NCBI GenBank assembly: GCA_002269645.1
Contig: NIVC01000006.1
Coordinates: forward strand, 1-64,000
Length of the DNA: 64,000 nucleotides
Direction of reading: 5' to 3'
Origin: Macrostomum lignano
Lineage: Eukaryota
In this document: in pieces, positions 11,191 through 39,300 of the stretch
Layout of the letters: the number at the start of each line of letters is the position of its first letter
Position numbering within the stretch: position 1 is the first letter of the stretch
Notes under the pieces: model-generated
What the model was told of the DNA's origin: nothing
What the model saw: the letters and a program-made list of their open reading frames with translations, nothing else
Database searches by the model: none
Translations under genes and position numbers: made by a program

Positions 11191-11959
11191 GGGAAATCGA
11201 TCATGAGCAAAGACCTTGGCTTATATGCCTCTAAGATGATAAATGGATTGATATCTCAACAGTGATGCAACGATGAAGCGTTTATTGATAAGAAAGCATT
11301 GAAGTCCGCTATGTAAGCATGTTTATGCACATATATTTGAATATTTAGCATAAATATAATGGCCTTGAATACCGCCCTCCATTGAAAACCTCTACTGATC
11401 TACTCGGCAGTAAAAAATCACAATTGCTGACAGACTTTGAGAAAAAATAAAGGTTATAAATTACAATCATAATCTATTTATTCAACAGGAAATCAGTTTA
11501 ATTAAACATTTTATATAGCCTCACAGATTTGGTCCGGGTTAGCAAGGTAGGAATAAAATAATACGATAATGCAATGCAGAAAGTTTATCGTAGCAACCGG
11601 AGCGCTTCTATCTGAGCCGTCATCATTTTGAATCATATTTTCAATTATTTTATTTATATCAATCTGAAGCCAATTAAATCAATAATCCAATAATAGATTA
11701 CTAATAGTAATAACCTTTGATTTTTCAACGGAATCGTTAACTGACTCTCAAGTTTAAGCGCTGACAGTTAATTACAGCAACAGAGACTGGATAATAATGG
11801 TGGATTTAAACACAGTTGAGCCGGTATAAACAAATAAACAACAGCGTATTGCCAGTGTCAGTAACAAACTAGATTTCATTATGGATGCCTTGTGCGAAAA
11901 AATTAATAGTTAATTAGCACGAGCGAGTGAACTGCCATTGAAATAACTGGATCCATTTT

Positions 11960-12550
11960 TATCCCAACAAATTCAAAATCCCATTCTCAACAAATTTAAA
12001 ATCCCATTCTCAACAAATTTGAAATCCCATTCTTAACAAATTTGAAATCCCATTCTCAACAAATTTAAAATCCCATTCTCAACAAATTAAAAATCCCATT
12101 CTCAAAAAATTTGAAATCCCATTCTCAACAAATTTGAAATCCCATTTCTCAAAAAAATTTGAAATCCCATTCTCAACAAATTTGAAATCCCATTCTTAAC
12201 AAATTTGAAATCCCATTTCTCAACAAATTTGAAATCCCATTTCTCAACAAATTTGAAATCCCATTTTCAACAAATTTGAAATCCCATTCTCAACAAATTT
12301 GAAATCCAATTTCTAAACAACTTTAAAATCCCATTCTTAGCAAATTTAAAATCCCATTCTCAACAAATTTAAAATCCCATTTTCAACAAATTTGAAATCC
12401 CATTTCTCAACAAATTTGAAATCCCATTCTCAACAATTTAAAAATCCCATTCTCAGCAAATTTCAAATCCCATTCTCAACAAATTTGAAATCCCATTTTC
12501 AATAAATTCGAAATCCCATTTCTCAACAAATTTCAAATCCCATTCTCAAC
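11960..12550. repeat. 23-bp AT-rich minisatellite downstream of Ral
   Basis: AAATCCCATTCTCAACAAATTTG tandem copies. Confidence 0.95.
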
Positions 12551-12703: not shown

Positions 12704-15700
12704 TCAAAGAATTTCGCATCTGCGCTTTTTCGGCTTCTTGCTGCGTCCGCCGCCGTTTCCGGTGACGGCCGATTGCTGCTTCCGGTGATGAATCTCGGTC
12801 AGCAGGTCGTAGAAAGCCTTGGTTACAATTCGATTAATAGAAGAAGGTTGAGAAAATTTATATTGCATTTTCAACAAACCGACAATGCGTGAAAATTTAG
12901 ATTGCGAATCAAAATTGACTGCTAGGCCTTTATCACTACTAACGGTAGTGCTATTTGAAAAGCTATTTAGACTAAATTTTCGGGTTGAATAATTTTTTTC
13001 TAAAATCATGTAATTGAATTTGAAATACGTAATCTCACTGTGCATGCAATTTAAGTTTGCGAAGCTATACAAAAATCAATTCTCTGAAATTTGATTGCAG
13101 AGTTTCCACCGTGAAGAGGGAAGAGGGAAGGTGTGGAAGGAGATGAAGGGGGCTTGAAGGGGATTTGGGAGAAACGGGTGAGGGAGGGCGTCAGGCGATG
13201 AGGGTGAAAGATGAGGGAAGGTAGGAGGGTATGCGGGAGGGGATGATGAGGGGTGAGGGAGAGTAGGAGGGTAGAGGCAGAGGATGAGGGAGGGTAGAGG
13301 GAAGGGATAAGAGAGGGTAGAGGGAGGGGATAAGGAGGGTAGAGGCAGAGGATGAGGGAGGGTAGAGGGAAGGGATAAGAGAGGGTAGAGGGAGGGGATA
13401 AGGAGGGTAGAGGCAGAGGATGAAGGAGGGTAGAGGGAAGGGATAAGAGAGGGTAGAGGGAGGGGATAAGGAGGGTAGAGGCAGAGGATGAAGGAGGGTA
13501 GAGGGAAGGGATAAGAGAGGGTAGAGGGAGGGGATAAGGAGGGTAGAGGCAGAGGATGAGGGAGGGTAGAGGGAAGGGATAAGAGAGGGTAGAGGGAGGG
13601 GATAAGGAGGGTAGAGGGAAGGTAGAGGCAGGGTATGAGGGAGGGGATGATGAAGGGTGAGGGAGGGTAGGAGGGTAGAGGCAAGGGATGAGGGAAGGTA
13701 GAGGGAGGGGATAAGAGAGGGTAGAGGCAAGGGATGAGGGAAGGTAGAGGGAGGGGATAAGAGAGGGTAGAGGCAAGGGATGAGGGAAGGTAGAGGGAGG
13801 GGATAAGAGAGGGTAGAGGAAGTGCAAGAGGGAGAATAAATGAGAGAGAAAGAGATAAACAGGTACAGAAGGAAAATAGATGGGGCGAAAACAATGTATG
13901 ACGGATGAAGAACTAATAAATATCACTATTAAGAGCGATTGCTTCTTAACTACTGATTGATTCTGTAGTCATCAGTCTGGCAGACAATATGATAATAATA
14001 TGAATTTATTGCGCCAGCAAACAGCTCTCGAATCAAAATGTATAATACAATAGCTGTTTGCTAAGCTGGCTATAGTACTGTAACAAAATAGACTATTGTC
14101 GGAGTGAGAGAGTGTGCGTAGGCTGCGCTCAAAGCAGGCTGCAGCAGCATTTGGCAGACGAGCCGCCACCCTGCAGAGCAGCCATGCCAGACTGCTGCCT
14201 GTTCAGCTGCGGCCGGCCGCGCTTGTGGTCCAGCACGGAGCGGATCAGGCCGAAGAAGGCCTTCGTTGTGTTGCGTGTAATTAATTTTATTGTTTTGCGT
14301 TGCGCGTTACATTTTTACAAAATAAAATGCTTGCACTGCCACTAATGAGTAGGAATATTCGGACATCACCTACCAATGTTGATAAATAATAATAAATGGA
14401 CAAAAATCATTACACTGTCTCGGGGTCATGAGACTGTCGGGGAGTGATGAGATTTGCCTGAGAGTGATGAGATTGTCTGGGAGTGATGAGATTTGTCTCG
14501 GAGTGATGAGATTTGCCTGAGAGTGATGAGACTGTCTGGGAGTGATGAGATTTGTGTGGGAGTGATGAGACTGTCTGGGAGTGATCAGATTTGTGTGGGA
14601 GTGATGAGACTGTCTGGGAGTGCGGAGACTTCCGAGACTGTCGGAGTGACGAGACTGTCGGAGTGACGAGACTGTCGGAGTGACGAGACTGTCTGGGAGT
14701 GCGGAGACTGTCGGAGTGACGCGAATGACGAGAACAAAGATGAGCGGCCCATCTAAAAGCGCAATCAATGGCTCACCTTGTCGACATTCTCTCTAGTTTT
14801 GGCTGAGGTTTCCAGGTAGGGGATTCGCCAGGCTTCGGCCCGGGCCTCGGCCTCCCTGGATTGCACCTGCCGGCCGTCGGTGAGGTCGCTCTTGTTGCCA
14901 ACCAGCAGCATGGGGATGGACTCGTCGCCTTTTACTCGGATGATCTGCTCTCTGCGCGATGGATGCAGTGAGGAGGGAGTAAATTAAATAAGCTTTGCCT
15001 GGGAGGGTGGCTGGAAGGTAAGGAGTGTTCGGGAGGGTAAGGAGTGTTCAGGAGGGTAAGGAGAGTGTCCGGGAGGGTAAGGAGGGTTCGGGAGGGTAAG
15101 GAGAGTGTCCGGGAGGGTAAGGAGAGTTCGGGAGGGTAAGGAGAGTTCGGGAGGGTAAGGAGGGTTCGGGAGGGTAAGGAGAGTGTCCGGGAGGGTAAGG
15201 AGAGTTCGGGAGGGTAAGGGAGAGTGTCCGGGAGTTAAGGAGAGTCCAGGAGGGTAAAGAGTGTCTGGGAGGGTAAAGCGTATCCGGGGGGGGTAAGGAG
15301 TATCCGGGGGGTAAGGAGTATCCGGGAGGATAGTGTCTAGGAGGGTAAGGAGTGAGAGAGCGGGCACTGCACAGGAATAGAAATCGATGGCCCCAGAGAC
15401 GCGAATTGACCTTACCTGAACTCATTAGTGGCGGCAAAGGACTCAGGATCGGTGAGCGAGAACACGCATAGGAAGCCCTCTCCGCCGCGGAAATAATTGT
15501 CCCGAATGCTGGCATAGTCCTCCTGGCCAGCCGTGTCCAGGATGTCAATGTGCACCTCGGTGCCCTCCAGGGTGACCTTCTTTCGATACATATCGGCTTT
15601 GGTTGGCTCGTAGTCTTCAACGAACTGGGCGCGGTTGAGACGGAGTTTGACAGAAATTGGCCTAACTATTCGTACATATAGCAATGAATGATGCTCAAGT

Positions 15701-16473
15701 AGTGCCACAAGTGCATGAGTAACTACCCTAAAAGTATCAGATTGTATGATAGCATGCAGATTGCTTAGCAGGAGTGATCTTCTAAAGAGTGGGCAGAGTG
15801 ACTAGGAGAGTGGGTAGAGTGACTAGGAGAGTGGGTAGAGTGACTAGGAGAGTGGGTAGAGTGACTAGGAGAGTGGGTAGAGTGACTAGGAGAGTGGGTA
15901 GAGTGACTAGGAGAGTGGGTAGTGTCTAGAAGTGGGTAGAGTGACTAGGAGAGTGGGTAGAGTGACAAGGAGAGTGGGTAGAGTGACTAGGAGAGTGGGT
16001 AGCTTCTAGAGAGTGGGTAGAGTGACAAGGAGAGTGGGTAGAGTGACTAGGAGAGTGGGTAGCTTCTAGAGAGTGGGTAGAGTGACTTGGGGAGTGGGTC
16101 GAGTACTCGGGAGAGTGGGCAGAATGCCCGGGGGATTGGGTAGAGTTCCCGGAAGAGTGAGTAGAGTGCCCGGGAATGGGTAGAGTGACTAGAAGAGTGG
16201 GTAGAGTGCCCTAGAAAATAAATATAGTGGCTAGTTATAAATAAGTAATCTACGAGAATTTAGGACGAGATTACGGGGAGTCTGGAAGACAGCTAGAGCG
16301 GACAGTGATAATGTACATGCACAAAATTGCAACTTCAGCAGGCCGACCGTAACGCTCACCTCGTCGTACATGAACTGCAGCGTAAGGGCGCTTTTACCAA
16401 CGGCGCCGCTGCCAACCATAATGATTTTGTGCACAGGCTGCGATGAGCTGGTCCCACTCTTCTGCTTGGACAT
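12704..16473 (-). CDS. RAL: Ral GTPase; exons 16473-16360, 15624-15416, 14951-14777, then distal last exon 12817-12704 (ends [11 protein letters not shown], 203 aa)
   Basis: [24 protein letters not shown]|[11 protein letters not shown] (Ral-specific effector loop), [24 protein letters not shown] and a CAAX end. Coding exon sizes 114/209/175 nt match the exon structure I recall for vertebrate RALA. Confidence 0.95.
13110..13860. repeat. Polypurine higher-order repeat between the two Ral last exons
   Basis: GGGTAGAGGGAGGGGATAAG / GGCAGAGGATGAGGGAG units, nearly pure purine on the + strand. Confidence 0.9.
14129..14260 (-). CDS. RAL: Alternative proximal last exon of Ral ([43 protein letters not shown], 209-aa isoform)
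   Basis: Phase-0 AAG acceptor at 14261-14263. Helix-5 start AFFGL parallels AFYDL of the distal exon. Ends in CAAX then TGA; AATAAA on the minus strand at 14005-14010. Confidence 0.8.
   Translation of the reverse strand, partial: AFFGLIRSVLDHKRGRPQLNRQQSGMAALQGGGSSAKCCCSLL
14420..15360. repeat. Two G-rich minisatellites in Ral introns (14420-14720 and 15000-15360)
   Basis: GAGTGATGAGATTTGTCTGG and CGGGAGGGTAAGGAGAG units. Confidence 0.9.
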
Positions 16474-17420
16474 GATTTCTTACTACTTACAGTACTAGAT
16501 AACGATTAAGACTATACCTGGCTTGTGATGTAATTAAATTTGCAATTAGTGCGCAAACTGAGTGTGGCGTGGCAGCTGAAATAAAATAAATTTGTGGCGT
16601 AAGTTTATAATTACCGATTAAATACATATACAGGTACTACTATGAGTAAAGTAAATTCCAACCCTCTAATCTGGAATTCGCGCACATTTCGCGGGTACTT
16701 CACAGGTGGAGTCCCTATTAGAGTGGGTAGAGTTTTCTATGAGTGTGGTAGAGTACATGGGAGTGGGTAGAGTCCAAAGGAGAGTGAGTAGAGTCCTTAG
16801 GAGAGTGGGTAGAGCCACTAGGAGGGTGAGTAGAGTCCTTGGGAGCGTGGGTAGAGCCCCTAGGAGGGTGAGTAGAGTCCCTAGGAGAGTGGGTAGAGTC
16901 CCTAGGAGAGTGGGTAGAGTCCCTAGGAGAGTGAGTAGAGTCCCTAGGAGAGTGGGTAGAGTCCCTAGGAGAGTGGGTAGAGTCCCTAGGAGAGTGGGTA
17001 GAGTCTATAGGAGAGTGAGTAGAGTCCCTAGGAGAGTGGGTAGAGTCCCTAGGAGAGTGAGTAGAGTCCCTAGGAGAGTGGGTAGAGTCTATACCGGTAG
17101 GAGAGTGAGTAGAGTCCCTAGGAGAGTGGGTAGAGTCCCTAGGAGAGTGGGTAGAGTCTATAGGAGAGTGAGTAGAGTCCCTAGGAGAGTGGGTAGAGTC
17201 TATAGGAGAGTGAATAGTCCCTAGGAGGGTGAGTAGAGTCCCTAGGAGAGTGGGTAGAGTCTATAGGAGAGTGAGTAGTCCTTAGGAGAGTGAGTAGAGT
17301 CCCTAGAAGAGTGAGTAGTCCCTAGGAGAGTGAGTAGAGTCCCTAGAAGAGTGAGTAGTCCGTAGGAGAGTGAGTAGAGTCCCTAGGAGTGTTTAGTCCC
17401 TAAGAGTGGGGTTAGAGAGT
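15790..17420. repeat. 21-bp GAGAGTGGGTAGAGT(GA/CC)CTAG family in two arrays (15790-16220 in Ral intron 1; 16710-17420 upstream of Ral)
   Basis: Same unit family and orientation on both sides of Ral exon 1. Confidence 0.9.
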
Positions 17421-20509: not shown

Positions 20510-23500
20510 TCAGGACCAATCTTCATCCGACAGCCAGTTCAATTGGATGGCGTCCTGGCACAGGCTTGGCGGGTAGGTTTGGTATTGCAGCTCGCTTGAT
20601 GGGTCCGCGTCTGCCAACGATCAATACTAATGAGCTAATAGCATGTCGCCTGGATGACACCATCCTGTTTCCTGTCTGCACCTGCTGCTTCCTGTCTGAC
20701 ACCATCCTGTTTCTTGTCTGCACCTTCTGCTTCCTGTCTGACACCATCCTGTTTCCTGTCTGCACCTTCTGCTTCCTGTCTGTCACCTGCTGTTTCCTGT
20801 CTGTCACCTGCTGTTTCCTGTCTGCCACCTGCTGTATCCTGTCTGCCTCCTGCTGTATCCTGTCTGCCTCCTGCTGTATCCTGTCTGTCACCTGCTGTTT
20901 CCCGTCTGCCACCTGCTGCTTCCTGTCTGTCACCTGCTGTTTCCTGTCTGTCACCTGCTGTTTCCTGTCTGTCACCTGCTGTTTCCTGTCTGTCACCTGC
21001 TGTTTCCTGTCTGTCACCTGCTGTTTCCTGTCTGTCACCTGCTGTTTCCTGTCTGTCACCTGCTGTTTCCTGTCTGCCAGCTGCTGTTTCCTGTCTGCCT
21101 CCTGCTGTTCTGTCTTCCACTTGCTGTTTCCTGTCTACCATTATGCTTTTTCCTGTCTGCCACCTGCTGTTTCCTGTCTGTCACCTGCTATTTCCTGTCT
21201 ACCATTATGCTGTTTCCTGTCTGCCAGCTGCTGTTTCCTGTCTGCCTCCTGCTGTTCTGTCTTCCACTTGCTGTTTCCTGTCTACCATTATGCTTTTTCC
21301 TGTCTGCCACCTGCTGTTTCCTGTCTGTCACCTGCTGTTTCCTGTCTACCATTATGCTGTTTCCTGTCTGCCAGCTGCTGTTTCCTGTCTGCCATTATGC
21401 TGTTTCCTGTCTGTCACCTGCTGTTTCCTGTCTACCATTATGCTGTTCCCTGTCTGCCACCTGCTGTTCCCTGTCTGCCACCTGCTGTTTCCTGTCTGCC
21501 TCCTGTAGTTTCCAATACATTCTAATTTTACGACTATCCTGATCCAACTGTTTCCACAGTGTAAATATACTTCAGGCAAATCATTACCGTCAGAGTAGAA
21601 CGGCACCGAGGTCGACTTGAAATTGCCGCCGCCGCCGCCGCCGTCGTCGTACCTGGCCAGCAGCTGGCCGACTGTCGCCGTCTCGCAGCCGAACTCCGCC
21701 AGCCGGTGCCGCAGCTCGCCGCCAGCCTCAGCCTCGCCGCTGCAATCGTCCGGCACAAGCAGAAGAAATTCGCGGTGCCGGCAGCGCAGGCGGGTCTGCA
21801 ATTCGGCGAGGCCGTCAACGCAGCCGAGCAGCCCGGCGCCGCCGGAGCCGCCTTCGCCAGGCAGCAGCGAGTCGACGGCCCAGCGGCTGGCCTCCAGCAT
21901 CTCCAGACAGGCGGCCAGGCGCTGCCGCTCCGATTTGGCTTTCAACGAAGCGGCCACGGATGCCCCGGCGGCTTCAGTCGCGGCATCTCGCAAACGGCGA
22001 AGGTCGCGAGCTCGAATCCCGATTGGCCAGCGGCTGTCGCGGCGGCCTGCGGCGGCTAACAGGCGGGTCAGGGTGTCCGGCTGGTAGCGCAGCGGGTCGC
22101 CAAGCAGCAGGCAGGGACCGCCGGTGACGGGGAAAATTGGTTGGAGAGATGAGGCCAGCGATGAGGCTGAGCTGGAGGCTGGGGAAGTGGGAATAAACAA
22201 TATGGATGTGGCAATCATAAATGTGTTCATTATAGCTTAGTCTCAACTGGGAAGCTGGGAGGCTGGCCCAGCAACTGGGGATCTGGGAGGCTGGCCCAGC
22301 TACTGAGGATCTGGGAGGCTGGCCCAGCAACTGAGGATCTGGGAGGCTGGCCCAGCAACTGAGGATCTGGGAGGCTGGCCCAGCAACTGAGGATCTGGGA
22401 GGCTGGCCCAGCAACTGAGGATCTGGGAGGCTGGCCCAGCAACTGAGGGGAGCTGAGAGGCTGGCCCAGCAACTGAGGATCTGGGAGGCTGGCACAGCAA
22501 CTGACACTCTGGGAGGCTGGCCTAGCAACTGACACTCTGGGAGGCTGGCCCAGCAACTGAGGGGAGCTGAGAGGCTGGCCCAGCAACTGAGGATCTGGGA
22601 GGCAGGCCCAGCAACTGACGCTTTGGGAGGCTGACCCTGAAATCGAAGATCTGGGAGGCTGGCCCAGCAACTGAGGATCTGGGAGGCTGGCCCAGCAACT
22701 GACACGCTGGGAGGCTGGCCCAGCAACTGAGGATCTGGGAGGCTGACCCTGAAACTGAGGATCTGGGAGGCTGGCCTAGCAACTAAGGATCAGGGAGGCT
22801 GGCCCAGCAACTGAGGATCAGGGAGGCTGGCCTAGCAACTAAGGATCAGGGAGGCTGGCCCAGCAACTGAGGATCTGGGAGGCTGGCCCAGCAACTGAGG
22901 ATCAGGGAGGCTGGCCTAGCTACTGAGGATCCCTATGAGCAGTCTCACCCGTAGCAGCGCAGGCAGCCGCCGCAGCCGCCCTGGCCTGCTCAAAAGCCAG
23001 AAATCGAACGTCGCGCCGTTTCCGAAGCTCCAGCAGGCCGGGCAGCTGCCAGGGCAACCTGTCCAGAGCGGAGGCGTGGGCGTACACCACGAGCTGCTGC
23101 TGCTGCTGCTGCTGCAGTTGCTGAATGCCATCCCGTCGGGGTCCACGGCACTGCAGCAGCAGGGAGGCGTGCAGCGGATCGCACTGCCGATGTCCGAGGC
23201 TGGTCAGGCGGCTGGCCAGATCTGCGCACTCCGCACTGTCCGAGATGCCGACCACGTGGAAGAATGGCGGCGGTGGAGGAGGAAGCGGAGGCGGCGGCGG
23301 CACAATGGACTGCTGCTGTGGCTGCAGTAGCGCAGATAGCAGAGAAGTAGGATAGTACTAATTAGATGACGAGACATTTAGCCTTAATAATACAGTCATA
23401 GTTACTCCTGCTGTTTACCACAAAACTGCGTTAATTTTTGCTGAGGTTTCTTTTATAGGTAGGTCGCATTTTTGGTAAAAAAAAGTAAGTTTAAGTTCCA

Positions 23501-26500
23501 TAGTTTCTGTAATCCATATCTCATTAGTAGTATTAAATAATTTTATAATTTTTGGGATTCTCGTGAGTTCACTTGAAAGGTCAAGGGTTCGATTCCTGAT
23601 TCTACTCGAGAGTTCACCCAGCTGTAAAATGGGTAACCAGCATTAGCTGGGGTAACTGAGGGTGTGAGTGGCGAACCCCCAGTCCTTGGACTGAACAGCC
23701 GTACGCAGCCTTCAGATGCGACGATGCGCCACGCAATAGCTGCGGCTGAGCTGTAGGTTGCACATATGGCCCAATTGGGGCAGGTTTATCAATTATTAAT
23801 ATTATTATTTTGGACAGTCTTGGCCCAGCGGCTAGCAACTGACACTCTTCGAGGCTGGCCCAGCAACTGAGGATCTGGGAGGCTGACCCTGAAACTGAGG
23901 ATCTGGGAGGCTGACCCTGAAACTGAGGATCTGGGAGGCTGACCCTGAAACTGAGGATCTGGGAGGCTGACCCTGAAACTGAGGATCTGGGAGGCTGACC
24001 CTGAAACTGAGGATCTGGGAGGCTGACCCTGAAACTGAGGATCTGGGAGGCTGACCCTGAAACTGAGGATCTGGGAGGCTGACCCTGAAACTGAGGATCT
24101 GGGAGGCTGGCTTAGCAACTAAGGATCAGGGAGGCTGGCTCAGCAACTGAGGATCAGGGAGGCTGGCCTAGCAACTAAGGATCAGGGAGGCTGGCCCAGC
24201 AATTGAGGATCAGGGAGGCTGGCCTAGTAACTAAGGATCAGGGAGGCTTAAATTTAAAATTCAAGACTGCTTATTAATTGTCAAACTTGAATAATCCGGA
24301 TTCTGCATTCTGCAACTATTGTGGTTCAGAAAAAGACTCAGCAGTGTTAAGGGTAGGGCAGAGAATTTATTGACTAGAAAAAAGGGTCAGACATACCGCA
24401 TGGCTGTAATAGGCGGCAAGGAAGCTGTGATCGATCGAGCCGGCTTGCCTAGCAACGGTTGCTAGGGCGGCGGACGCCCGCTGCTGCTGCTGCTGCTTAG
24501 CGACGGCCAGAGCGGCCAGCAGTCTGGTTTGCATCTGAGCGAACAGAGGCGGCGGCTGCTGCGGCTGAGACGGTGGCGCCTCATCGTCAAGGAAAGCATC
24601 GGCCAGGCCAATCTTGTAGCTGCGGATCATCGCGTCCTGGCGTTCCCGATAGGTCAGCGCGGAGCCGCCCGCGGCCGGCTCAGCAGCGGCAGGCGGCGGC
24701 GGTGGCTGCTGCCGGGGCATTGCGAGCTGGGAATTATTGTGATGGAGATGAGGCGGTTCAGGCGACGGCCGGAGCCTGGGCGGCAAGCAGCCTGCGGCAG
24801 GGGGTAAGGAGATTGAAGCAGCTGGGAGCGTTGCGTGGGCACTGAAGGGCTTGCTAATCTAAGGGATAGAAATGAACTAACATGGATACATGTGGGCAGG
24901 TTATTAGGAAGACGCTGCTTATAGTAGTATTCGGGATTTCAGAACGCAAGTCTTCGTATAGGGGGTATTAAGAGATTTTTACTTAAAGTACCTTTACGAC
25001 TTTCGGTATTTACGTTGGGAGATTTTCGGAATCAGCTGTATTGCGGGGTTTTATGAATCAGCTGAATTGGGAGATTTTGGGAATTAGCTGAATTGGGAGA
25101 TTTTGGGAATCAGCTGAATTGGGAAATTTTGGGAATTAGCTGAATTCGGACTTTAGGAATTAGCTGAATTGGGGGACTTTGGGAATTAGCTGAATTGGGG
25201 AATTTTAGGTATGAGCTGAATTGGGAAATTTTTGGAAGCAGCTAAAGTGGGAGATTTTGGGAAATTGTGTGAATTTGGGATATTTCGGGAATTAGCTTAA
25301 TTGGGGGATTTTGGGAATTAGGTGAATTGCACGAGAGGGGGCGGTTCGGAATCAGCTGAATTATGAGATTTAGGAACAGTTGAGTTGGGAGATTTTGAGA
25401 ATCAGCTAAATAAGGTTTTTCCTTTCAAAATGAGTTAGTTTTTTAAATCAGAGCTGTGCCAACTCAGAACTCACACTTCTGCTGAGCAATGCTTCCAGCA
25501 GCGGCAGATTCGAAAAGAATATCGCTGGGCCACTGCAAACTGGGCGCCGGCGACAAAGGTCGACGCAGAACTTGCCGTTGACAGGCGGTCATCGTCCAGT
25601 CGGACAGACCCTTCGACAGACACCGGCTGGCCGAGAACCGCCTCGGTGGCAGTGGCGGCAGGGCTCCAATCGACGCCGCTGTCAAATTCGGCAAACAGCC
25701 GTCAGCGGCTCTTAGAAACCGGCGTGCAGTCGAGCGCAGTCGATGCCGCAGTCGACGAATTCGCCGACGAACAATCGAGCCAGACTTGGCGGCGCCGTCA
25801 ATCCCAGCGTCAACATCGTCGACTACATCGAACTTGTCAAAGCCGATGCTCACAGGACTGCCGACATTGCCGCCACCGCTGCCGCTGTTATCATCGCCGT
25901 CAAAATCGTCGTCGTCGCTTGTCAAAGACGCGGCCGCCGTCAGAGAGTCTGGATAGAGTTGGTTGATCGCCAACTGCTCGTTGCTAAGGACGCCACCGCC
26001 GCCCGCGTAGAAACCGTCCAGGTAGCGCAGTAGAGCGAAGCCGACGTTGCGAACGCTTCTTGAGCGACGCTTGGGGTCTGCGGTAAGGTCCGGAAATGTG
26101 GACTGCCAGACTAGTGAAACATGGACTGCCAGACTAGTGAAACATGGATTGCAAGACTAGTGAAACATGGATTGCAAGACTAAGGAAACATGGATTGCTA
26201 GACTAGGGAAATATGAATTGCTAGACTAGGGAAATATGGATTGCTAGACTAGGGAAATATGGATTGCTAGACTAGGGAAATATGGATTGCTAGACTAGGG
26301 AAATATGGATTGCTAGACTAGGGAAATATGGATTGCTAGACTAGGGAAATATGGATTGCTAGACTAGGGAAATATGGATTGCTAGACTAGGGAAATATGG
26401 ATTGCTAGACTAGTGAAACATGGATTGCTAGACTAGTGAAACATGGATTGCTAGACTAGTGAAACATGGTTTGCTAGACTAGGGAAATATGGATTGCTAG

Positions 26501-29500: not shown

Positions 29501-30464
29501 GGATCTGGGAGTGCGGCAGGTGGCCCAGCAACTGAGGATCTGGGAGGAATAAAAGTACTCAAAGTAGGCCACTCACCAACAGACGCAGGTAAGTCGATGC
29601 TGTCATCATCGGAGCCGCTGCTCACTTGAGCCTCCAAGTTGCACGCAGCGGTGAAGCGGGCGTCAATGAAGCTCTGCAGTTGGCTCACCGCTGTAGTTGG
29701 CGAAATTTCTGCATTGTTGAAAAAATGAAAATAAAGCAGTTGCAGCACCATTGTGTAGGAGAATCCATCTTAGATAAGTAGGGACCTGAGCGGAGTGAAC
29801 TATAGCTCATTCGGTAAATATAGGGACCTGAGCGGAGTGAACTATAGCTCATTCGGTAAATATAGGGACCTGAGCGGAGTTAACTATTGCTCACTCGGTA
29901 AAAATAGGGACCTGAGCGGAGTACTGGCATAAATAGAACAATGCATTAAAACTACATATATTGCACACCTGCATCTGTTCCATTGACTTCAGAAGCTTTA
30001 TCAGCCGGTTTGCTGCTAGCAGATGCATTGGCAACAACAACAGCAGAAGCAGTATCAGAAGAGGCTGGCAAGCACCGCGTCAGAGCCACCTGAGTCTCCG
30101 ATAGCAGACAATCTGCCAAATCGTCAAGCGATGAATCTCCATTTCCAGCATCCTCATTGCTGGCATTGTTATTAAACTCCTCGGCGGCCTTGCAAACTTC
30201 ATCAAGCTGCTTAGCTAGGCTAGCCAGATTCAGCTTAGCAATCTTGTCCACCGAGGCGCAAATGGCAGCTTCACTGGGCTGCCCATCGCTAGATGACGGT
30301 GCCAGTTTCCGCTTCCGGTTGCCATTTCCCGTCTGGCTGGAACTGCCATCCAGGCCAGATTGGGTCAGCCGGTTCAAAAAGTTGGACACTTCATCGGCTG
30401 CTGTGGCCGAGGCTGCATCAACCTCGGGCATGTCCGGGCCATTGCCCAGCTTGGAGGTGAGCAT
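20510..30464 (-). CDS. Predicted 1041-aa protein with a TASOR-like (DomII + PIN-like) C-terminus; exons 30464-29969, 29708-29577, 28998-28783, 28178-27960, 26077-25475, 24791-24397, 23321-22949, 22178-21588, 20610-20510
   Basis: Nine GC-rich exons join through phase-compatible GT-AG sites into one 3126-nt ORF. DLASRLTSLGHRQCDP, LVVYAH..LPGLLELRKRRDVRFLAF, PIFPVTGG..LLGD and LAELQ..RHREFLLLV..FGCETATVGQLLARY are colinear with the TASOR C-terminus as I recall it. Gene model confidence is higher than family confidence. Confidence 0.7.
20650..21510. repeat. 21-bp minisatellite in the last intron of the TASOR-like gene
   Basis: CACCTGCTGTTTCCTGTCTGT tandem copies. Confidence 0.95.
22245..24250. 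repeat. 28-bp family arrays at 22245-22930 and 23820-24250
   Basis: GGGAGGCTGGCCCAGCAACTGAGGATCT and GGCTGACCCTGAAACTGAGG variants. Confidence 0.95.
23555..23720 (+). mobile_element. tRNA-derived SINE fragment in an intron of the TASOR-like gene
   Basis: B box GGTTCGATTCC (23586-23596) followed by CACCCAGCTGTAAAATGGGTA, a motif typical of conserved SINE central domains. Confidence 0.5.
25020..25420. repeat. Degenerate 26-bp intronic minisatellite
   Basis: GAATTAGCTGAATTGGGAGATTTTGG units. Confidence 0.85.
26095..27930. repeat. 23-bp minisatellite, about 1.8 kb, highly homogeneous
   Basis: TATGGATTGCTAGACTAGGGAAA tandem copies filling almost the whole intron. Confidence 0.97.
28245..28735. 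repeat. 20-bp intronic minisatellite
   Basis: TCAGAGTGACAATCTGACTA tandem copies. Confidence 0.95.
29045..29550. repeat. 35-bp derivative of the 28-bp family
   Basis: GGGAGTGCGGCAGGTGGCCCAGCAACTGAGGATCT tandem copies. Confidence 0.95.
29778..29925. repeat. 42-bp repeat, 3-4 copies, in intron 1 of the TASOR-like gene
   Basis: TAGGGACCTGAGCGGAGTGAACTATAGCTCATTCGGTAAATA copies. Confidence 0.9.
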
Positions 30465-31419
30465 GTGACAGCTGCTGCTGTTTGACTCTCGAGTTGCAGG
30501 TGAAAGTTTTAATAAATTGATTGACTTGGCACTGGGAGAGCAAAAGTTGCAGCATAAATGCAGCAGCAAGTAATTCAATACAATTGTGAAAATATACAAC
30601 CCTTTAGATTCAATTTAGCAGCTATAAGGAGGAAACTGTCAGAGTCAGATGCAGATAAACATTGATTTTAAGTATTTCTTTATTGCAGAATTTTCTACAG
30701 CTTCTATAATACTTTATGAAGATAGGAAATTTTAAAAAGCAATTTAGTGCTAAGTGATACCTGATTTTGAAGAGGCTTAGTGTGTATAGATTTCTATTAA
30801 ATATACCTAGACTATTGTGATAATATCTTTAAGATTTGTGCCATTTAAATAAATGCCAATTCATCAAATTAACACTATCAAAATTTTGGCTTTCTAAAAA
30901 ATTAGGCTGCAACAAAAGTTTTGAGCATTTTTGAGCATTTTGAGCACCCTATCCATAGCCCATAGTCCAGATCATGGCAGGCGTAGGCTGGAATGAAAAT
31001 TCATGTTTTTTAAATTTTATGCTGACATAAAATAAAAAATTTTTCACACCAATACTAAAATTGTTTATATGCCATTTTTTCAAAGCATATATATTTTTAG
31101 GAATTCAAAACTTTTATTTAACTTTAAAATGGCTGTTTTTTTTTGCAAAAAACTGAATATTGTTTGTTTTAATTTGGCCTTTCTTATAATTTTACGTTAT
31201 TATTTTCAATTTTAGTTTCCAATTATTTTTAAAGAGCTTTCAATGTTGGTTGATATTTAACTACACAATTACACTAGCCTTGAACTTGGCTATTTTTGTA
31301 TGCCGACTGTGTACACTTCATGTCAAACCTGAAAATTCTATATGCCAAGTGTATGCCAAGATTGTCAGCGAGACCAAAAATATGCCGGAAAATTCTGGCG
31401 AAAAGGCCACCTTCGAATG

Positions 31420-32546
31420 AGTATAACTTTGGCTGTCAACTTTTCTATCAACTATTCCATTAACTTTCTGTCAACTATTCCATTAACTTTTCCATCAACT
31501 ATTCCATTAACTTTCTATCAACTATTCCATTAACTTTTCTATTAACTATTCCATTAACTTTCTGTCAACTATTCCATTAAATTTTCCATCAACTTTTATG
31601 TCAACTGTTTCATGAACAATTATGCAAGTCTGTTAACTAGATTCCATCAAATTTTCTGTGTACTCTGAATGGAAAGTGATATTTTTCTGTATAAATGCAG
31701 ACTTTTCCTTTGCAATTTTTTATGCATGCTTAAATTGGTTGAGTATTTATGTATATGTATAAATTATAAATAAATAACACACATGCAATTTTTTTTTCGT
31801 GTGACATACATGTTCCAGAATTTAAATGGTATTGCTACACTATTTGCACTATATCTGCACTTGTTTCATCGATTCATCTTTGGTAACTAGGGTAAATGGA
31901 AAAGATGCACGTTTTTACTACTGTAGGCTTGTTTTTTCATTGATATATAAGCATACAAACAGTCAATAAATGAGCAAAGAGCTACTCGCATGATGATCCT
32001 ATTTGACAAAGTCACATGTTTTTCCAAACATTAAATTGCACTTTAATGAATGCATTTAAAGTGCAACACTATATTTTTTTTAATTAAATACATAGGTCGC
32101 TAGAATTTTGCCTATCCCCTAAAAAAATATTGAAAGAGTTCTAATCAAATTATTTTTGATTAATTAAAGTACAATAAACATGTCCTGCTAACAGTTAACT
32201 ACATATGCTCACACAAGGACTTCTAGATTTACTAGACCAACTAGTTAGTCTAGAAGTCCTTGTGCTCACAATTTACAAATAAAAATAACATTAATGTATG
32301 AGCTTGGATGTCATACAGAATTATTTCATAAAAGTTGATGGATAAAGTTGAAGGAAAAGTTGACAGAAAAGTTAATAGAGAAGTTTATAGAAAAGTTGAT
32401 GGAAGAGCTAACAGAAAAGTTGACAGATAAAGTTGTGTACCCAACTTATAGGAAAAGTTGATGGAAAAGTTAACAGAAAAGTTAATGGAAAAGCTGAAAG
32501 AAAAGTTGATGGCCAAAGTTATATTTGTACCTTCCTGACTATGTCC
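31420..32546. mobile_element. Foldback-like element with inverted subterminal arrays, related to the 35740 MITE
   Basis: Array of AACTTTTCCATC-type units at about 31420-31610 is inverted relative to GAAAAGTTGATG units at about 32330-32525. The right end CCTTCCTGACTATGT matches the MITE TIR; the left TIR is degenerate. Confidence 0.6.
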
Positions 32547-35500
32547 CATACCACAGGGCCTAGTCCAGATCATGCTGGGTGCATGCCTGAACAAAAATTG
32601 AATAATTACAAATGCACACCAGAAAAAATGTAGTGCATGCCCATTCTAAAAAATATGCCAGTGTTGCAACAATAAATGACCTTTTTTACGTTGTGACAAT
32701 AAAATACTTTTTTTTAAATTAGGCCTACATAATAAACCCCTATTACCAAATAATTTGGTTGCTTTTTATGCTTTTTTGGCAATACTATTTATAGCAGAAA
32801 ATTTAAACACTCAAAGATTTGTTTAAATACCCTTTTAAGAGCTTGAAAAAACTAGAAAGCTTGAAATTTGCACTTAAAAATGAACTTTTTCATCTTTTTT
32901 CTACTTCACAATAACTTTTACACATGATTCTATAAAGTTCACACTAGGTGTGCACGCACACTATCTTCTCAGGAGTGATGCACATTGCACGCCAACTGTG
33001 CACGCCTAATTTTGGCATGCAAGGCCAATGCACACCCGAATTTTTGGGCATAGGCCTATACTATATGATCCAGTCCAGAGTGTGGGTCCCATCCCATAGC
33101 CATAGGCATAGGGTCTTACTTTAAGGGATATAGACTAGAAAAAACTTTTTAAAATATATTTAGATATTAGTATTTAATAAAATCTTGTCTTAAAAGTTTT
33201 TAAAACTACAAAAACTTTTATGTTTATACCAACAAAAAACCCAATGTAGGCTTTATATTTGACAAGTCATACCTCATAGGACCCCCACCCCACTAAAGTC
33301 CCTATGCCAGGTAACAAAAATCATGACATGATGCCAATTGATGGTCATGCTGATGCCTATGAGGACTAAAAAGTGGTTTGGCAAAAAATTAAAGATTCAG
33401 ACCTAAAGATTTTAAAGACCTAGACCTAGGCCTAGTCAAAGCAAAGAAACTAGTATAGGTCTAGTTCAATTTAATGCACTGGATATTTATGTAATTAAAA
33501 GGAAGTTGTTTGATTGGCGATTACACTAGGCCTACTGACTAGGTTAGCCTAACATGTTAGACGAAGTGTTTAACTTCGTTGAAAAATGAAACTCTCCATA
33601 ACTAGAGGGAGATACGTGCTTTAAAGTTTTTATTATTGAATGACAATCGCCAAGAAGAAAGTGAAAAATTGTGCTAAGTTAGGTTGTTAAGGCAGTCAAA
33701 TATTAACAGAGTTTAATATTTATACTGCTGTTTTTCTTGGAATTCCGAACCGATTCTGGTTCTGGAATTGGTAATGTGAAAAGGCCCATTGAGAGATTCC
33801 GCGCGCTCTTTATTAACCTGGCGAAAATGATGTTTTTAAATTGCTTCATGATGACTCACTCGTTATTTCACGATGTTTTTTATAATATATTATAAATGCA
33901 CTTTTCATTACAATTTTGCACTTCAAAAGTCTATGCTCTTACCTTTTAGTATTGCAATGGCCGCCCTAACTTTATAACTTAAGAGGAATCAATCTTCATT
34001 CGTCCAAATAAACTGCATACCAGTTTAATATAGTATTCGTTTCTTCTTGAAGCCAAAATCTTATTTAGAGCCTACATTATATTTTAATTGCAGATACGTA
34101 AAGACTAAAGATTATGTATATTTATGTTATTTTCTAGTAATCGTGCATACATGTTTATCGGCCAATCGTCCTAAAGAGCCTAAAAATAACTATAAAAATT
34201 AGGCTACTTACTTTCTTATGTATTTAAAATTTATCATTTTGCAAGAGCTGCACCTGATATTAAAAAACGTATTCATTCACGCATTTACATGTAGCTACTC
34301 CAAAAAAGCACATTCTGACAATTGCATTCGGAAAGATTCGCGTATACCGAAACCTATACATTTAAATTTTTAATTAAGATCACAGTTTAGTTGACTTAAT
34401 TAGTTATATAATAAAGCAGGGGATATATACATGTACGTAACAACTGAGGCAGGTTCGCATTATCGCTACACCTTGCATGTACAAGCGTACATGTACGAGT
34501 AGCAGCGTAAGTCATAAAAAAGATTTATAGATCGAGTTTGTCCCAACAACCACCGTGTGAGACAGCAGAATTGTACATTGGTTGCCCAATAATTGCATAA
34601 ATTTTCTCCCGGTGAAATGCTGGCACTTGATTATTGCATACGTATGCATACATCTTTGCTAAGTTATTTTAATGTGCGTTCATCAAAAATTAAATTTATT
34701 CATCACCCATATTGACCCAATAAAGATTTTCTAGTGGTAGTGATAAAATCGAAACTTTGCTAGCTGAAGCCTATAGTGTCGTATACAACCAAAGTATAAG
34801 TTCTAGTTAAACACATAGGTTGTAATAAAAATTTCAAGGTAGAACAGTTGAAAAATACTGAAAAATTTTTGAGATAAAACGATTAATTTTTTAAGAAGTT
34901 ATATTAGTTTGTTTAAACTGAATAAGAAAGTTTAAAATACCAACTGATTTCCTGGAACAGCCCGCGCTGGGAACGGTCGAACGAAGTGTCAGTGTCAGCA
35001 AATGCTGAAAATGCTGATTGCATCGGCAGCACTTTTGCACTTTAGCTACCTAAGGATTATTGATACTTGAAAATGAATTGATAAAAGAATTTACTAATTT
35101 AAGAAATGTATATTGTTTTATACATTTAGTTTAAAATGTATTAAATTGCTTCTTACAATTTTATTTCTAATAGAAATTTTCTATGCTATGTCACGTATCT
35201 GACTGATGTTCCGATGGAATGGTATCAATAAAACATTGTCATTAATTGGCCTGGTTGGCTCTCTTATATTACCTCATCTTAGATCCTATCTTATTTCACT
35301 TAAAACTAAAAGCGCTATACTTGTCAAACTATTTCCAATTGCCAATTAGATTGATTTAAAAATGCAATATAATAGAAATCAGGTAAAGTAGCTTGCTTGG
35401 CAAATAAAATAAAAAGAAATCCAAAAATCAACATGTGGTTTTTTTCACACACCAAGGTGCATTGTCAGGTATATTGTTTGAGACAAAAGGTGTGAGTAAG

Positions 35501-35739
35501 CAAATTTATAAATTATTTGTCAATGAAACGTATGTTAGTATGTAGCTGGTGAGTAAGTATTTTGTTTATTATATAGCTTTGTATTTTGTTTCATAGCTGG
35601 TGAGTCACCCACCCTTAATATGCAACTCCAACACAATGGTTCAGGCCATGTTTTTCGATTCCAGGTATTCTGAGTGAGAGAGCATTGACCTTGTTGTAAC
35701 CACTGCTAACTCAATTATATTTTGTTTTCTACCTATTGG

Positions 35740-36302
35740 ACATAGTCAGGAAGGTGTCCAGTGTATGCAGGAACTAATTCTGGGCAAAATTTAGCCTGTA
35801 CACCAATGTACGCCAATTTTTTTAGCTTCATTTCGAACATTACGCTGTACACTGAAGTCCTTTTTCCATATTTGAAATTGGATTTTACGAAAGAATGGAC
35901 TACTTTATTGCATGCAACAATTTAAAAAAAGTTGAAAACAGAAACAAATAAAACAATTCTTTTTTCACAAAAGTGCAAAATAACAATCTTTAGAAATAGT
36001 TTTCCATTATCTGCTTATTTTTTATTATTCTTTAATTTTTTCAATGGCCATAAATCAACAAAGACATATGATACAATGCAAATAAGATTGAATATTATTT
36101 GTAAAAAAGGTCACTGTGCAATTGCTTATGTATACAGACAGTGATTATGATGCTGCCAGTAAAATTGGTACACCGATTTTGTCGTTCTGTTATGTGTGTA
36201 CGCAGATACGCAAGTTTTCTAAAGATCTATATGCTGAAACTGATTCTAACGGCCAAGTGTACGCGGGATTATTCCTGCGTACGGACACCTTCCTGACTAT
36301 GG
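35740..36302. mobile_element. Non-autonomous DNA transposon (MITE), 563 bp, about 20-bp TIRs, 8-bp TSD CCTATTGG
   Basis: CATAGTCAGGAAGGTGTCC (35741-35759) is the reverse complement of GGACACCTTCCTGACTATG (36283-36301). CCTATTGG flanks both sides (35732-35739 and 36303-36310). An 8-bp TSD fits the hAT or P superfamilies. Confidence 0.85.
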
Positions 36303-39300
36303 CCTATTGGTCTTTGCCTTGCCTTGCCCTATGGACTATTAACCTCCTATTACTCTGTACATACAAAATACTTACTCACTAGCTACATACATTTCATTGA
36401 CAAATAATTTATAAAATCGCTTACTCGCACCTTCTGTTTCAAACAATATAACTAACAATGCACCTTGCTATGCAAAGAAAAAAACTACATATTGATTTTG
36501 GGATTTATTTTCATTTTAATAGAAGTTTTGGCAATTGTCAAGTTCCATTCGTTAAATTATTTTAACTCTAGAAAAGTATTATACAAACTGTTTTAAGTAC
36601 AAATAACTACTTTTAAGAGACTTCAGTTTAATTAGGCACTAATTCTATGCTTTAAGTTCAAAACTTGTTGTAAATATAATATATCTGACATAGAAAAGCT
36701 GCAATAGTCTATGGCTAAAATGTTAACAAGTGAACAAGTCTTGATAGAAACAAATAAAAAGTATTATTATTGATGGTCAAACTGCCAATAAATAGCAAAA
36801 GCTTTAAAATATAGAATTAGTGCTTAATCAGGCTTGTCTCTTAAAAGTATTTATTTTTACTTGAAACAATTGGTATAATACTTTTCTGGAGTCAAAATAA
36901 TTTATTGAACAAAACTTGACAATTGCCAAAGTTTTTATATTTGACTTTTATAGAAGTCATATATTGTAAGGCCTAATTATATATAGTAGTTGTTATTATT
37001 ATAGTTACCATATAAATAGCAAAACTTACTTTTAGGGTCAACGCATAAGATACATCTGGGCCTAGGGTCTTTATTTAATGTAACTAGGTGTTAAAGAATA
37101 TTGAATTTATCAAGATTTTTTACTCCAAGATTTTATATTTTTTCAACAATACAATATGAGATTTGATCAAGATTTTAAGATATATAGGCCTAATTCAAAT
37201 TAGACAAAGCTAAAAAATTGAAACTAGGCTTACCCATATAACTTTAGTTAAAATCATAACCTTTAGTTCATAAAAAAACATAGATTTTTTAGTTCATCAT
37301 TTTTCTTAATATGGCTTAATCCATTAATATGGATGACACTATAATAGGTTGATTTTTGGTATTAATTTGATCGAATTTGAATACAATCTACTTTGGTATA
37401 GCCACTTTGGTAACTGCTACTTTAGTAATAAAAAATGACCACTTTGGTAATAGCCACTTTAGTAACTAAGTAGATTTATGACTACCAATACTATATTTTT
37501 ATGGTAATTAAGTTTAGGAACTATTAGTTTAATAGTTAACATTTAAACTATTTTATTGCCTAGTGTAGTTTAATTTTCTATTTAAACTAAATTATAATTT
37601 GTTTAAATTTGTGCATTACTTTATAACAAAAATTTAAAGGTGACAGAGAACAACATGCCAATGTCCAGTTGAAAGTTGAAATATTAAAGTGAATAAATAT
37701 AAAATTATAAATGAAAAAAGTAGATTTGGTCAACAAAGTTGCTAACTCAAAGATTCTAATATATATTATATTTGGTCAACAAGATGTCTTAGTTTGTACA
37801 TGTATCTAGTGCACCTAGAAATTAAAATGAAATTTTTTTGTAGATTAAAATATACATTGTTTTTAGCTTTAATCCAAATCTTCAAGTTTTCAAGAACCTA
37901 TTAATCAATTGTTTTTTGTTGTTCTTTCTTTAAACTTTGTTTGTAAAATATTTTTTGAGCATATCAATCAATATATACTGCTATTTCCACTTGTTATTGA
38001 AGTGGCTATTATCAAAATGGCTAAATCTAAATTATCTAAATATAACTGTATAAATAGCAAAATTATTATTTTTATGGTCATCGTACATAGAAATCACAAT
38101 GGCTATTTTTACAGTCATGAGGAAAAATATCATTTAAATTAAAATGTAATAGTTAATATTTATCCATTGTATCAATTTGTTGATTTAACACATTTTTTTT
38201 TAAATTTAGTCACCTTATTGTTCTTATTTGCATTGTAAGCTTGTTATTTTATTTAGATGATATTTATTTTTTAAGTGTTGACTGTAAAATAACTATCTCA
38301 CTTTTATATAGTCACCATAATAATAACAACTGCTATTATATAAATAGGCAATCTACAACTACAAAATTATATGTTTGTTTAATATTAATTTAGTATGAAT
38401 TTTCTTAATAAAAGTAATAAAAGTTACATTTTGGCTAGCTACTTTCAAGCTGACTATGGTTTATAGAGAAATTTCAGCTGTGACTAAGCTACCAAGCTTT
38501 TATTTATAGAGTAATATAGCTTATAGAATTATATAAAATGTATTTTGGCTAGTTCATATAGTCCCTTTTGGAAAAAAGTTGTTAAATAGTAGATAGCTAT
38601 CTAGCATATTTTCAGTATGACCCTGCAATGCAGTGCATTTTCTATTAGGCACAGTGTGGTGTAGCACAGTAGGATACTTTGTGTAGTGCTTAGAATCTAT
38701 ATCAAAATGGTCATATACAAAATTGACAAAATGTCAAAACATCAAAAGTTGGCAACATTTTTGGTATGCTCTGCATAGTAGTGCTGTTTTATTAGTGTGT
38801 TACCATTGCCAAAGCAATGGAGAATGTTAAAAACCTTTATTGTTACACCTTACTCCCAAATCTTATATATATGCTAGAAATTTCTGGCATGTAATGGGCA
38901 TGAAAAAAATTGGTATAAAGTATCTGGCGTAAGACATAATCTGCCAGAATATTGTACTGCAGAGCTGGTATATAGCATAGCTGTTTGCATACAAAAGACC
39001 AAAATGTCATAATGCAAGACAGGGTTCTATAGTCCTGACTCCTATCTTGTTGCAAAGCAGAAAAGTCCTTTATTGTTCCAATGACTTTTTGATAATGTCT
39101 GGCATATGTATCATGAGTAAATTTGTTTTCTGGCATAAACCCAAATTTATAGTTTAGGGGATATGAAGTCTAGCTCCAAATGACTAAGAATAAGATTATT
39201 CAAGTGTGTGTATGAGCCTCGCAGGCTAGCTCAATCTTGGTTTGTAGCTTGTTGCTGGGGCACCAGGCCCCAGGGTTCTTTATTTATTTCTCTGCTTCCC

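Follow-up and report, generated by a model that had tools for sequence, protein, structure and literature searches.

We analyzed a 64,000-nt window of the genome of the flatworm Macrostomum lignano (contig NIVC01000006.1, positions 1 to 64,000) by tblastn with human RalA and by direct reading, and identified a Ral GTPase gene on the minus strand. The gene comprises three coding exons followed by two phase-0 terminal exons, which we call proximal and distal (Table 1). By its sequence the gene is a Ral and not another member of the Ras family. A phmmer search of the PDB gave scores of 281-272 bits for RalA and 262-256 bits for RalB, with H- and K-Ras next best at 191 bits, and the Pfam Ras profile matched with 185 bits over 161 of its 162 positions. 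The G1-G5 motifs were all present in the coding sequence (CDS) as GSGAVGKS, the T in YEPTKAD, DTAGQ, NKSD and SAK, and the best database matches that had a source name bore the name Ral. The Ral effector loop, YEPTKADSYRKK, was identical at 11 of 12 positions, the exception being a change of Ser to Met (DMYRKK). We noted that the GSGAVGKS of the window Ral has an Ala at the equivalent of Ras Gly13, as in Rho and Rac, and that the Ral relatives compared have DSYRKK in place of DMYRKK. An older M. lignano paralogue, Mlig009726 (P0006), carries the canonical residues at both the Gly13-equivalent and the effector-loop position.

The original prediction, made from the letters of the window alone, had placed two phase-0 terminal exons after ENVDK, each with an AAG acceptor, an AF start and a CaaX box followed directly by a stop codon. 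Reading of the minus strand and assembly of the CDS bore this out, coordinates included. Both terminal exons start with AF[FY]xL[IL], and they end in CSLL-stop (proximal) and CEIL-stop (distal). When either of them was joined to exon 3 in phase 0, a complete open reading frame (ORF) resulted, of 209 amino acids with the proximal exon and 203 amino acids with the distal one. The distal isoform is the annotated one and matched the M. lignano proteins PAA49705.1 and PAA94545.1 exactly. A scan of the three frames of the gene strand over the 64-kb window for the pattern 'alpha5-start ... CaaX-stop' returned only two sites, both of them the terminal exons, and tblastn with each tail returned one locus per tail; the two-exon pattern is therefore not a matter of chance. 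The AATAAA signal that had been assigned to the proximal exon was also found in its place. On the other hand, there was no AATAAA or ATTAAA within ~1 kb 3' of the distal stop codon, the first one lying at 11654 past a 23-bp minisatellite, so the distal isoform would have either a long, repeat-containing 3' untranslated region (3'UTR) or a non-canonical signal.

Table 1. Coordinates of the Ral gene, its two terminal exons and the associated repeats in the window.
Feature	Coordinates	Strand	Details
Ral coding exon 1	16473-16360	minus	ATG at 16473; MSKQKSG...FMYDE; donor GTGAGC
Ral coding exon 2	15624-15416	minus	ends NEF + AG of a split Arg codon; phase-2 donor GTAAGG
Ral coding exon 3	14951-14777	minus	begins REQIIRVK, ends ENVDK; then GTGAGC; shared 5' splice site GT 14776-14775
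Proximal alternative terminal exon, CDS part	14260-14129	minus	43 codons + TGA (stop 14131-14129); acceptor AG 14262-14261, preceded by ...caacgAAG
Distal terminal exon, CDS part	12817-12704	minus	37 codons + TGA (stop 12706-12704); acceptor AG 12819-12818, preceded by ...taaccAAG
AATAAA poly(A) signal, proximal exon	14010-14005	minus	starts 119 nt 3' of the proximal stop codon
Minisatellite, 17-20/39-bp units	14414-14721		fills most of the intron from exon 3 to the proximal exon
Minisatellite, 23/68-bp units	13224-13834		between the two terminal exons
Minisatellite array	12000-12550		
Minisatellite array	15013-15354		
Minisatellite array	15786-16208		
Minisatellite array	16709-17389		

Sequence comparison identifies the two terminal exons as tandem copies, homologous and equal in phase, of the last exon of Ral, each with a Leu-terminal CaaX box, in keeping with the exon duplication that the prediction had invoked. 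At the level of the sequence, the tails that they encode differ in their second membrane signal, again as had been proposed. The proximal tail ends in CCCSLL and has two extra Cys residues directly before the CSLL, with a single Lys or Arg among the 10 residues that precede the CaaX Cys, whereas the distal tail has one Cys with no extra ones and seven Lys or Arg residues in the same interval. Stable binding to the plasma membrane takes such a second signal, which may be palmitoylated Cys residues next to the CaaX box, as in H-Ras, RhoB and Cdc42-palm (PMC9190017), or a polybasic tract, as in K-Ras4B.

In homology, composition, conservation among genomic copies and age, the proximal exon appears to behave as coding sequence, which makes it a probable genuine alternative terminal exon. 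It carries the alpha5 start (AF-x-x-L-I-R), the linker and the CaaX box of a Ral last exon, and it joins at the phase-0 intron that splits VDK/VFFDL in Drosophila, Plutella and Capitella. Its GC content was 66% and its GC at third codon positions (GC3) 84%, as compared to 32-39% GC in the flanks and a GC3 of 73.5% in the constitutive core. We compared three near-identical genomic copies of the locus (L003, which is the window, L001 and L004) and found 0 variable sites out of 132 in the proximal exon, against 51 out of 1475 in non-repeat non-coding DNA and 5 out of 625 in the constitutive coding exons (Fisher p of 0.019 relative to all non-coding DNA and 0.028 relative to the immediate flanks). 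The 3' flank of the exon had 4 variable sites and a 6-nt indel in 144 nt, and the intron just upstream also varied among the copies. The constraint on the proximal exon is therefore confined to its CDS and does not reflect regional homogenisation.

The older paralogue Mlig009726 gave an indication of the age of the exon duplication. It was 78% identical to our query over the aligned region and 75% identical over the exon-3 segment. The proximal exon retains the Arg (L-I-R) that most Ral last exons of other animals have at this position, while the distal exon has lost this Arg and has the derived T-E-I-H in common with the only last exon of Mlig009726. For this reason the simplest account is that the exon duplication came before the gene duplication and that the proximal ORF, Cys cluster and CaaX box have been maintained ever since. 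If so, Mlig009726 has lost its Cys-rich exon. The tail of P0018 (...ENVEQVCEAFFD) might have pointed to a proximal exon in the paralogue, but we rejected this reading since the tail merely results from translation on into the intron.

The prediction had also stated that this arrangement was not known for Ral, and at the level of the databases that statement failed. We found seven same-species pairs of Ral isoforms in NCBI whose cores were 100% identical up to NVDK and which diverged from the very next residue; the mollusc isoforms were contributed by a further search that started from the Capitella protein. In the oyster Crassostrea virginica (X2/X3) the canonical tail ends ...KKSKKRKCTIL and the alternative one ...PKEHTTKCCVLM, and in the oysters Saccostrea echinata and S. 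cucullata (X2/X3) a polybasic CTIL tail is paired with ...TTKCCVVM. Physella acuta (X2/X1) pairs ...GGKKKCVIL with ...QTTGCNCVLM, and Copidosoma floridanum (X1/X2) pairs a polybasic tail with ...KAKCCNIL. The remaining two species also have a canonical polybasic tail, the alternative being non-basic in Mya arenaria (with a single Cys in X1) and hyper-polybasic in Haliotis cracherodii. The exon junction of M. lignano, in phase 0 right after VDK, was the same as in all seven pairs and in the loci of Plutella and Capitella, each of which has two terminal exons. In Plutella (L006) the polybasic exon lies at 21974-22087 and a Cys-Cys exon at 24785-24904. In Capitella teleta (KB306751.1, L007) the terminal exons lie at 13444-13575 and 14324-14434; the latter (VFYDLMRDIRSRKAESEKQTNDKSKKKPKRKKCTIL followed by a stop codon, with a ttgcag acceptor) is unannotated and of the canonical type, ~750 nt 3' of the annotated exon end. 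The annotated Capitella exon is of a divergent type, which Paralvinella and several Logan and JGI sequences also carry. Both forms of the tail were polybasic in Capitella and other annelid-type Rals.

Many of the best matches to the flatworm protein were insect proteins named 'Ral-a isoform X2', whose tails are weakly basic or non-basic and end in Cys-Cys-a-a-X. Such tails read ...KSHCCQLL in Diptera, ...KRCCILL in Hymenoptera, ...RNCCNIL in Lepidoptera and ...SCCILF in Artemia, as compared to ...RKKLKCTIL in the canonical form, and annotated Ral proteins with Cys-Cys tails were found in Orthoptera as well. Full-length ORFs with Cys-Cys tails also occurred on Logan and JGI contigs of ~1 kb (e.g., P0071 and P0081), which is consistent with cDNA of the Cys-Cys form. 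In one hymenopteran-like Logan transcript, P0204, both tail exons followed each other in a single ORF (...KKKKCKIL-Q-VFFDLMRAIAARK...NCCILL). Here the polybasic exon can apparently use a donor at its stop codon and be spliced to the next exon like a cassette, unlike simple alternative last exons. The Ral gene of Nematostella had no intron at the VDK position and a single tail, and the Drosophila locus had a gap of Ns where the polybasic exon was expected. Two Ral-A-like sequences of Asterias rubens, P0106 and P0092, had the tails ...RHKRKCVILCSVL and ...KRKCVILWELCDCCCPSW..., and their sequence goes on past what seems to be a CaaX box, which points to additional tail variants, or to read-through models, in echinoderms. 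From these comparisons, an alternative last exon at the VDK intron is widespread in protostomes, and the contrast of polybasic and Cys-rich tails recurs among them. We did not find a paper that describes Ral tail isoforms in the searchable literature, and papers on splicing and the transcriptome of M. lignano gave no information on them; the tail-exon swap is thus present in automated annotations and apparently undescribed.

We also asked whether the proximal exon shares its ancestry with the arthropod Cys-Cys exons. Over the first 13 residues, its mean BLOSUM score was 25.8 with the non-basic Cys-Cys tails, which are mostly from arthropods, and 26.9 with the polybasic tails. The distal exon, by comparison, was clearly nearer to the canonical type, with a score of 35.4 against 27.8. 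The order of the exons differed too, with the non-canonical exon in front in M. lignano and Capitella and the canonical polybasic exon in front in Plutella, in Drosophila and in the hymenopteran-like transcript. Common ancestry with the arthropod exons was not supported by the similarity scores, and the exon order was opposite. Together, the tail scores and the opposite order favour at least two exon duplications, one in the spiralian lineage and another in that of insects.

A survey of 167 Ras-superfamily genes reported only KRAS and CDC42 to swap membrane-targeting tails, and that study does not mention Ral or include it among its C-terminal splice cases (PMC9882654). The prediction had described the M. 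lignano exons as KRAS4A/4B-style, and part of this description held. As in KRAS, the fourth coding exon is present as two homologous versions in tandem, joined at a phase-0 intron that falls inside the terminal part of the G domain, and the proximal exon encodes a tail with palmitoylatable Cys residues while the distal one encodes a polybasic tail with a single Cys, both of them with a CaaX box. The architecture, however, looks different. In KRAS, 4A is a cassette exon and 4B then serves as 3'UTR, whereas the proximal exon of M. lignano comes with an AATAAA of its own and lacks a strong donor after its stop codon, so that it looks more like the last exons of CDC42. The KRAS tails are, moreover, farnesylated, while both M. 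lignano tails end in Leu and fall under the geranylgeranyl rule. KRAS belongs to another GTPase family and its switch is of independent origin, as had been proposed, given that exon 4A was inserted in jawed vertebrates (PMC9882654). CDC42 likewise has alternative terminal exons with separate 3' ends, which give Cdc42-prenyl (CVLL) and the brain form Cdc42-palm (CCIF); one of its tails combines a prenyl group with basic residues and the other has adjacent Cys residues that are palmitoylated (PMC9190017). However, CDC42 is of the Rho family and its palmitoylated Cys lies inside the CaaX box, whereas the proximal tail of M. lignano has two Cys residues before a normal CSLL box and is in this more like RhoB or H-Ras. 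Within the same family, the Ral pairs of the oysters, Physella and Copidosoma use the same phase-0 intron after VDK and combine a conserved polybasic exon with a divergent alternative that is, in oysters and many insects, a weakly basic or non-basic Cys-Cys-a-a-X tail. The three Cys residues in a row set M. lignano apart from these. Vertebrate RalA and RalB are orthologous and have geranylgeranylated Leu-CaaX tails whose differences drive localisation and function. They differ in that tail diversity comes from two genes, with the basic tract and a CCxL box in one exon (P0198, ...RIRERCCIL) and no alternative exons.

We put the probability at roughly two in three that Ral of M. lignano consists of three constitutive coding exons followed by a tandem pair of homologous 3'-terminal exons, which are used in a mutually exclusive manner and encode different membrane signals, as a flatworm case of the widespread protostome alternative Ral last exon. 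Under this reading, splicing of the exon-3 donor (GT at 14776) to the acceptor at 14261/14260 would give a Ral of 209 amino acids with a non-basic tail that ends in CCCSLL, from an mRNA that most likely ends at the AATAAA at 14010-14005. Alternatively, the same donor would skip the proximal exon and its poly(A) site and join 12818/12817, which would give the annotated Ral of 203 amino acids with the polybasic tail. CaaX boxes that end in Leu direct geranylgeranylation, and as both boxes do so, both tails would be expected to be geranylgeranylated. The proximal tail could then gain S-palmitoylation at the two Cys residues that adjoin the CaaX Cys, while the distal tail would bind membranes electrostatically through its polybasic tract. 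Alternative splicing and polyadenylation would in this way produce differently lipidated isoforms that may be sorted to different membranes or trafficked with different dynamics. Provided that the proximal exon is used, the worm would produce two Ral proteins that share the G domain and differ in the membrane anchor. This would supply a protein isoform that the genome annotation now lacks and would offer a simple system for how tail chemistry directs Ral and exocyst signalling in a regeneration model that is amenable to transgenesis. The locus would be a new and unannotated example of the Ral tail-exon swap rather than a new principle. Along with the isoforms of molluscs, annelids and insects, it suggests that the swap is a recurrent solution for Ral in protostomes, parallel to KRAS4A/4B and CDC42. 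More broadly, Ral may be the third Ras-superfamily GTPase, after KRAS and CDC42, to swap its tail through alternative last exons, either anciently or repeatedly across protostomes (flatworm, molluscs, annelids, insects and crustaceans) and often between polybasic and Cys-rich forms, with vertebrates using the RalA/RalB pair instead; we judge the odds of this wider statement to be even.

Several observations weigh against the use of both exons and led us to consider whether the proximal exon is an unused relic of the tandem duplication, kept intact by chance or by gene conversion among polyploid copies, with the distal isoform the only one made. The 209-amino-acid isoform had no exact match in a collection of ~15 billion proteins and no near-identical match in a full-length search, and the junction of exon 3 with the proximal exon was in no public protein or model. 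This absence is, however, weak evidence because the distal isoform is also known only from NCBI and UniRef genome annotation and not from transcript assemblies. A word-indexed search with the proximal tail alone gave no candidates, probably owing to a limit of the index, while an exhaustive HMMER search of 1.84 billion representatives with the 43-residue tail returned nothing but an unrelated repeat protein and UniProt A0A1I8JS33. The latter, named 'Actin-related protein 2', is the only database model that touches the proximal exon, and it is ambiguous. It begins exactly at the proximal acceptor and in frame (AFFGLIRS...), contains several frameshifts, reads past the proximal stop codon into the 3'UTR and is fused to Arp2, a gene that lies downstream. 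The Arp2 portion of the model is just as garbled, which points to an error-prone sequence or model. We therefore rejected it as proof of a transcript, and it is at most an independent annotation that chose the same acceptor and frame, lending weak support. The relic explanation can also draw on the poor polypyrimidine tract of the proximal acceptor (acacaacgaag/G) and on Mlig009726, which works with a single polybasic exon; we found no second terminal exon at its locus (L002 12588-13415, NIVC01000023.1), where the last intron is all tandem repeat. Finally, the conservation statistic is a modest one (p≈0.02, from three closely related copies only), and with zero substitutions in the proximal exon, synonymous and non-synonymous changes could not be compared. 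Yet the exon appears to predate the split of the two Ral genes, as judged from its ancestral Arg versus TEIH, and its 43-codon ORF, CaaX box and stop codon are still intact. A GC3 as high as that observed would have decayed in AT-rich flanks if the exon were neutral, and differences among the copies in the adjoining intron and 3' flank, but not in the exon, count against blanket gene conversion. In addition, the annotations of many other protostomes list an alternative exon of this kind as an isoform in its own right. On balance we consider a relic unlikely.

It is also possible that the proximal exon is expressed but that its main role is not a switch between palmitoylation and a polybasic tract. 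It could instead serve interactions with chaperones, calmodulin or kinases, regulation through the 3'UTR and poly(A) site, or read-through into Arp2. Our prediction of palmitoylation and localisation rests only on the rules for H-Ras, RhoB and Cdc42, and the alternative exons of protostomes are not all rich in Cys, as the polybasic pairs of Capitella and other annelids and the tails of Mya X1 and Haliotis attest. Owing to this lack of uniformity, the common theme is a conserved exon accompanied by a fast-evolving one, which is not always a matter of palmitoylation. Furthermore, within the proximal 3'UTR A0A1I8JS33 uses the GT at 14078-14077 as a donor and connects it to an acceptor (10359-10358) that precedes the Arp2 ATG at 10328 by 29 nt. 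This donor is weak, though, and the fusion model is heavily frameshifted in both of its parts. The contrast between the M. lignano tails is clean, with CCC and one basic residue against a single Cys and seven basic ones, and the same contrast recurs in oysters and in several insect orders. We thus hold a different main role to be improbable, and a switch between two membrane anchors remains the reading that we prefer. The acceptor at 10359-10358 (tttcag/AA) is itself strong, and the Arp2 mRNA may be spliced or trans-spliced there; transcripts that read through from Ral into Arp2 may also occur.

Both strands of the region at 12.6-14.4 kb were also examined for other genes or RNAs, and only repeat-derived ORFs and no Rfam match were found. 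Each of the three Ral introns and both flanks had a minisatellite array of its own, with 17-23-bp units in up to ~30 copies, and the lengths of the arrays varied between the three genomic copies. Another UniProt model of M. lignano Ral, A0A1I8IJF2 (P0003), runs from ENVDK into the minisatellite of intron 3 (window positions 14776-14650) and stops without a tail, probably as an artefact of a contig break within the repeat in an older assembly. Elsewhere in the window, positions 30000-42000 form a 12-kb block of very low GC (27-36%), as compared to 41-58% in the rest.

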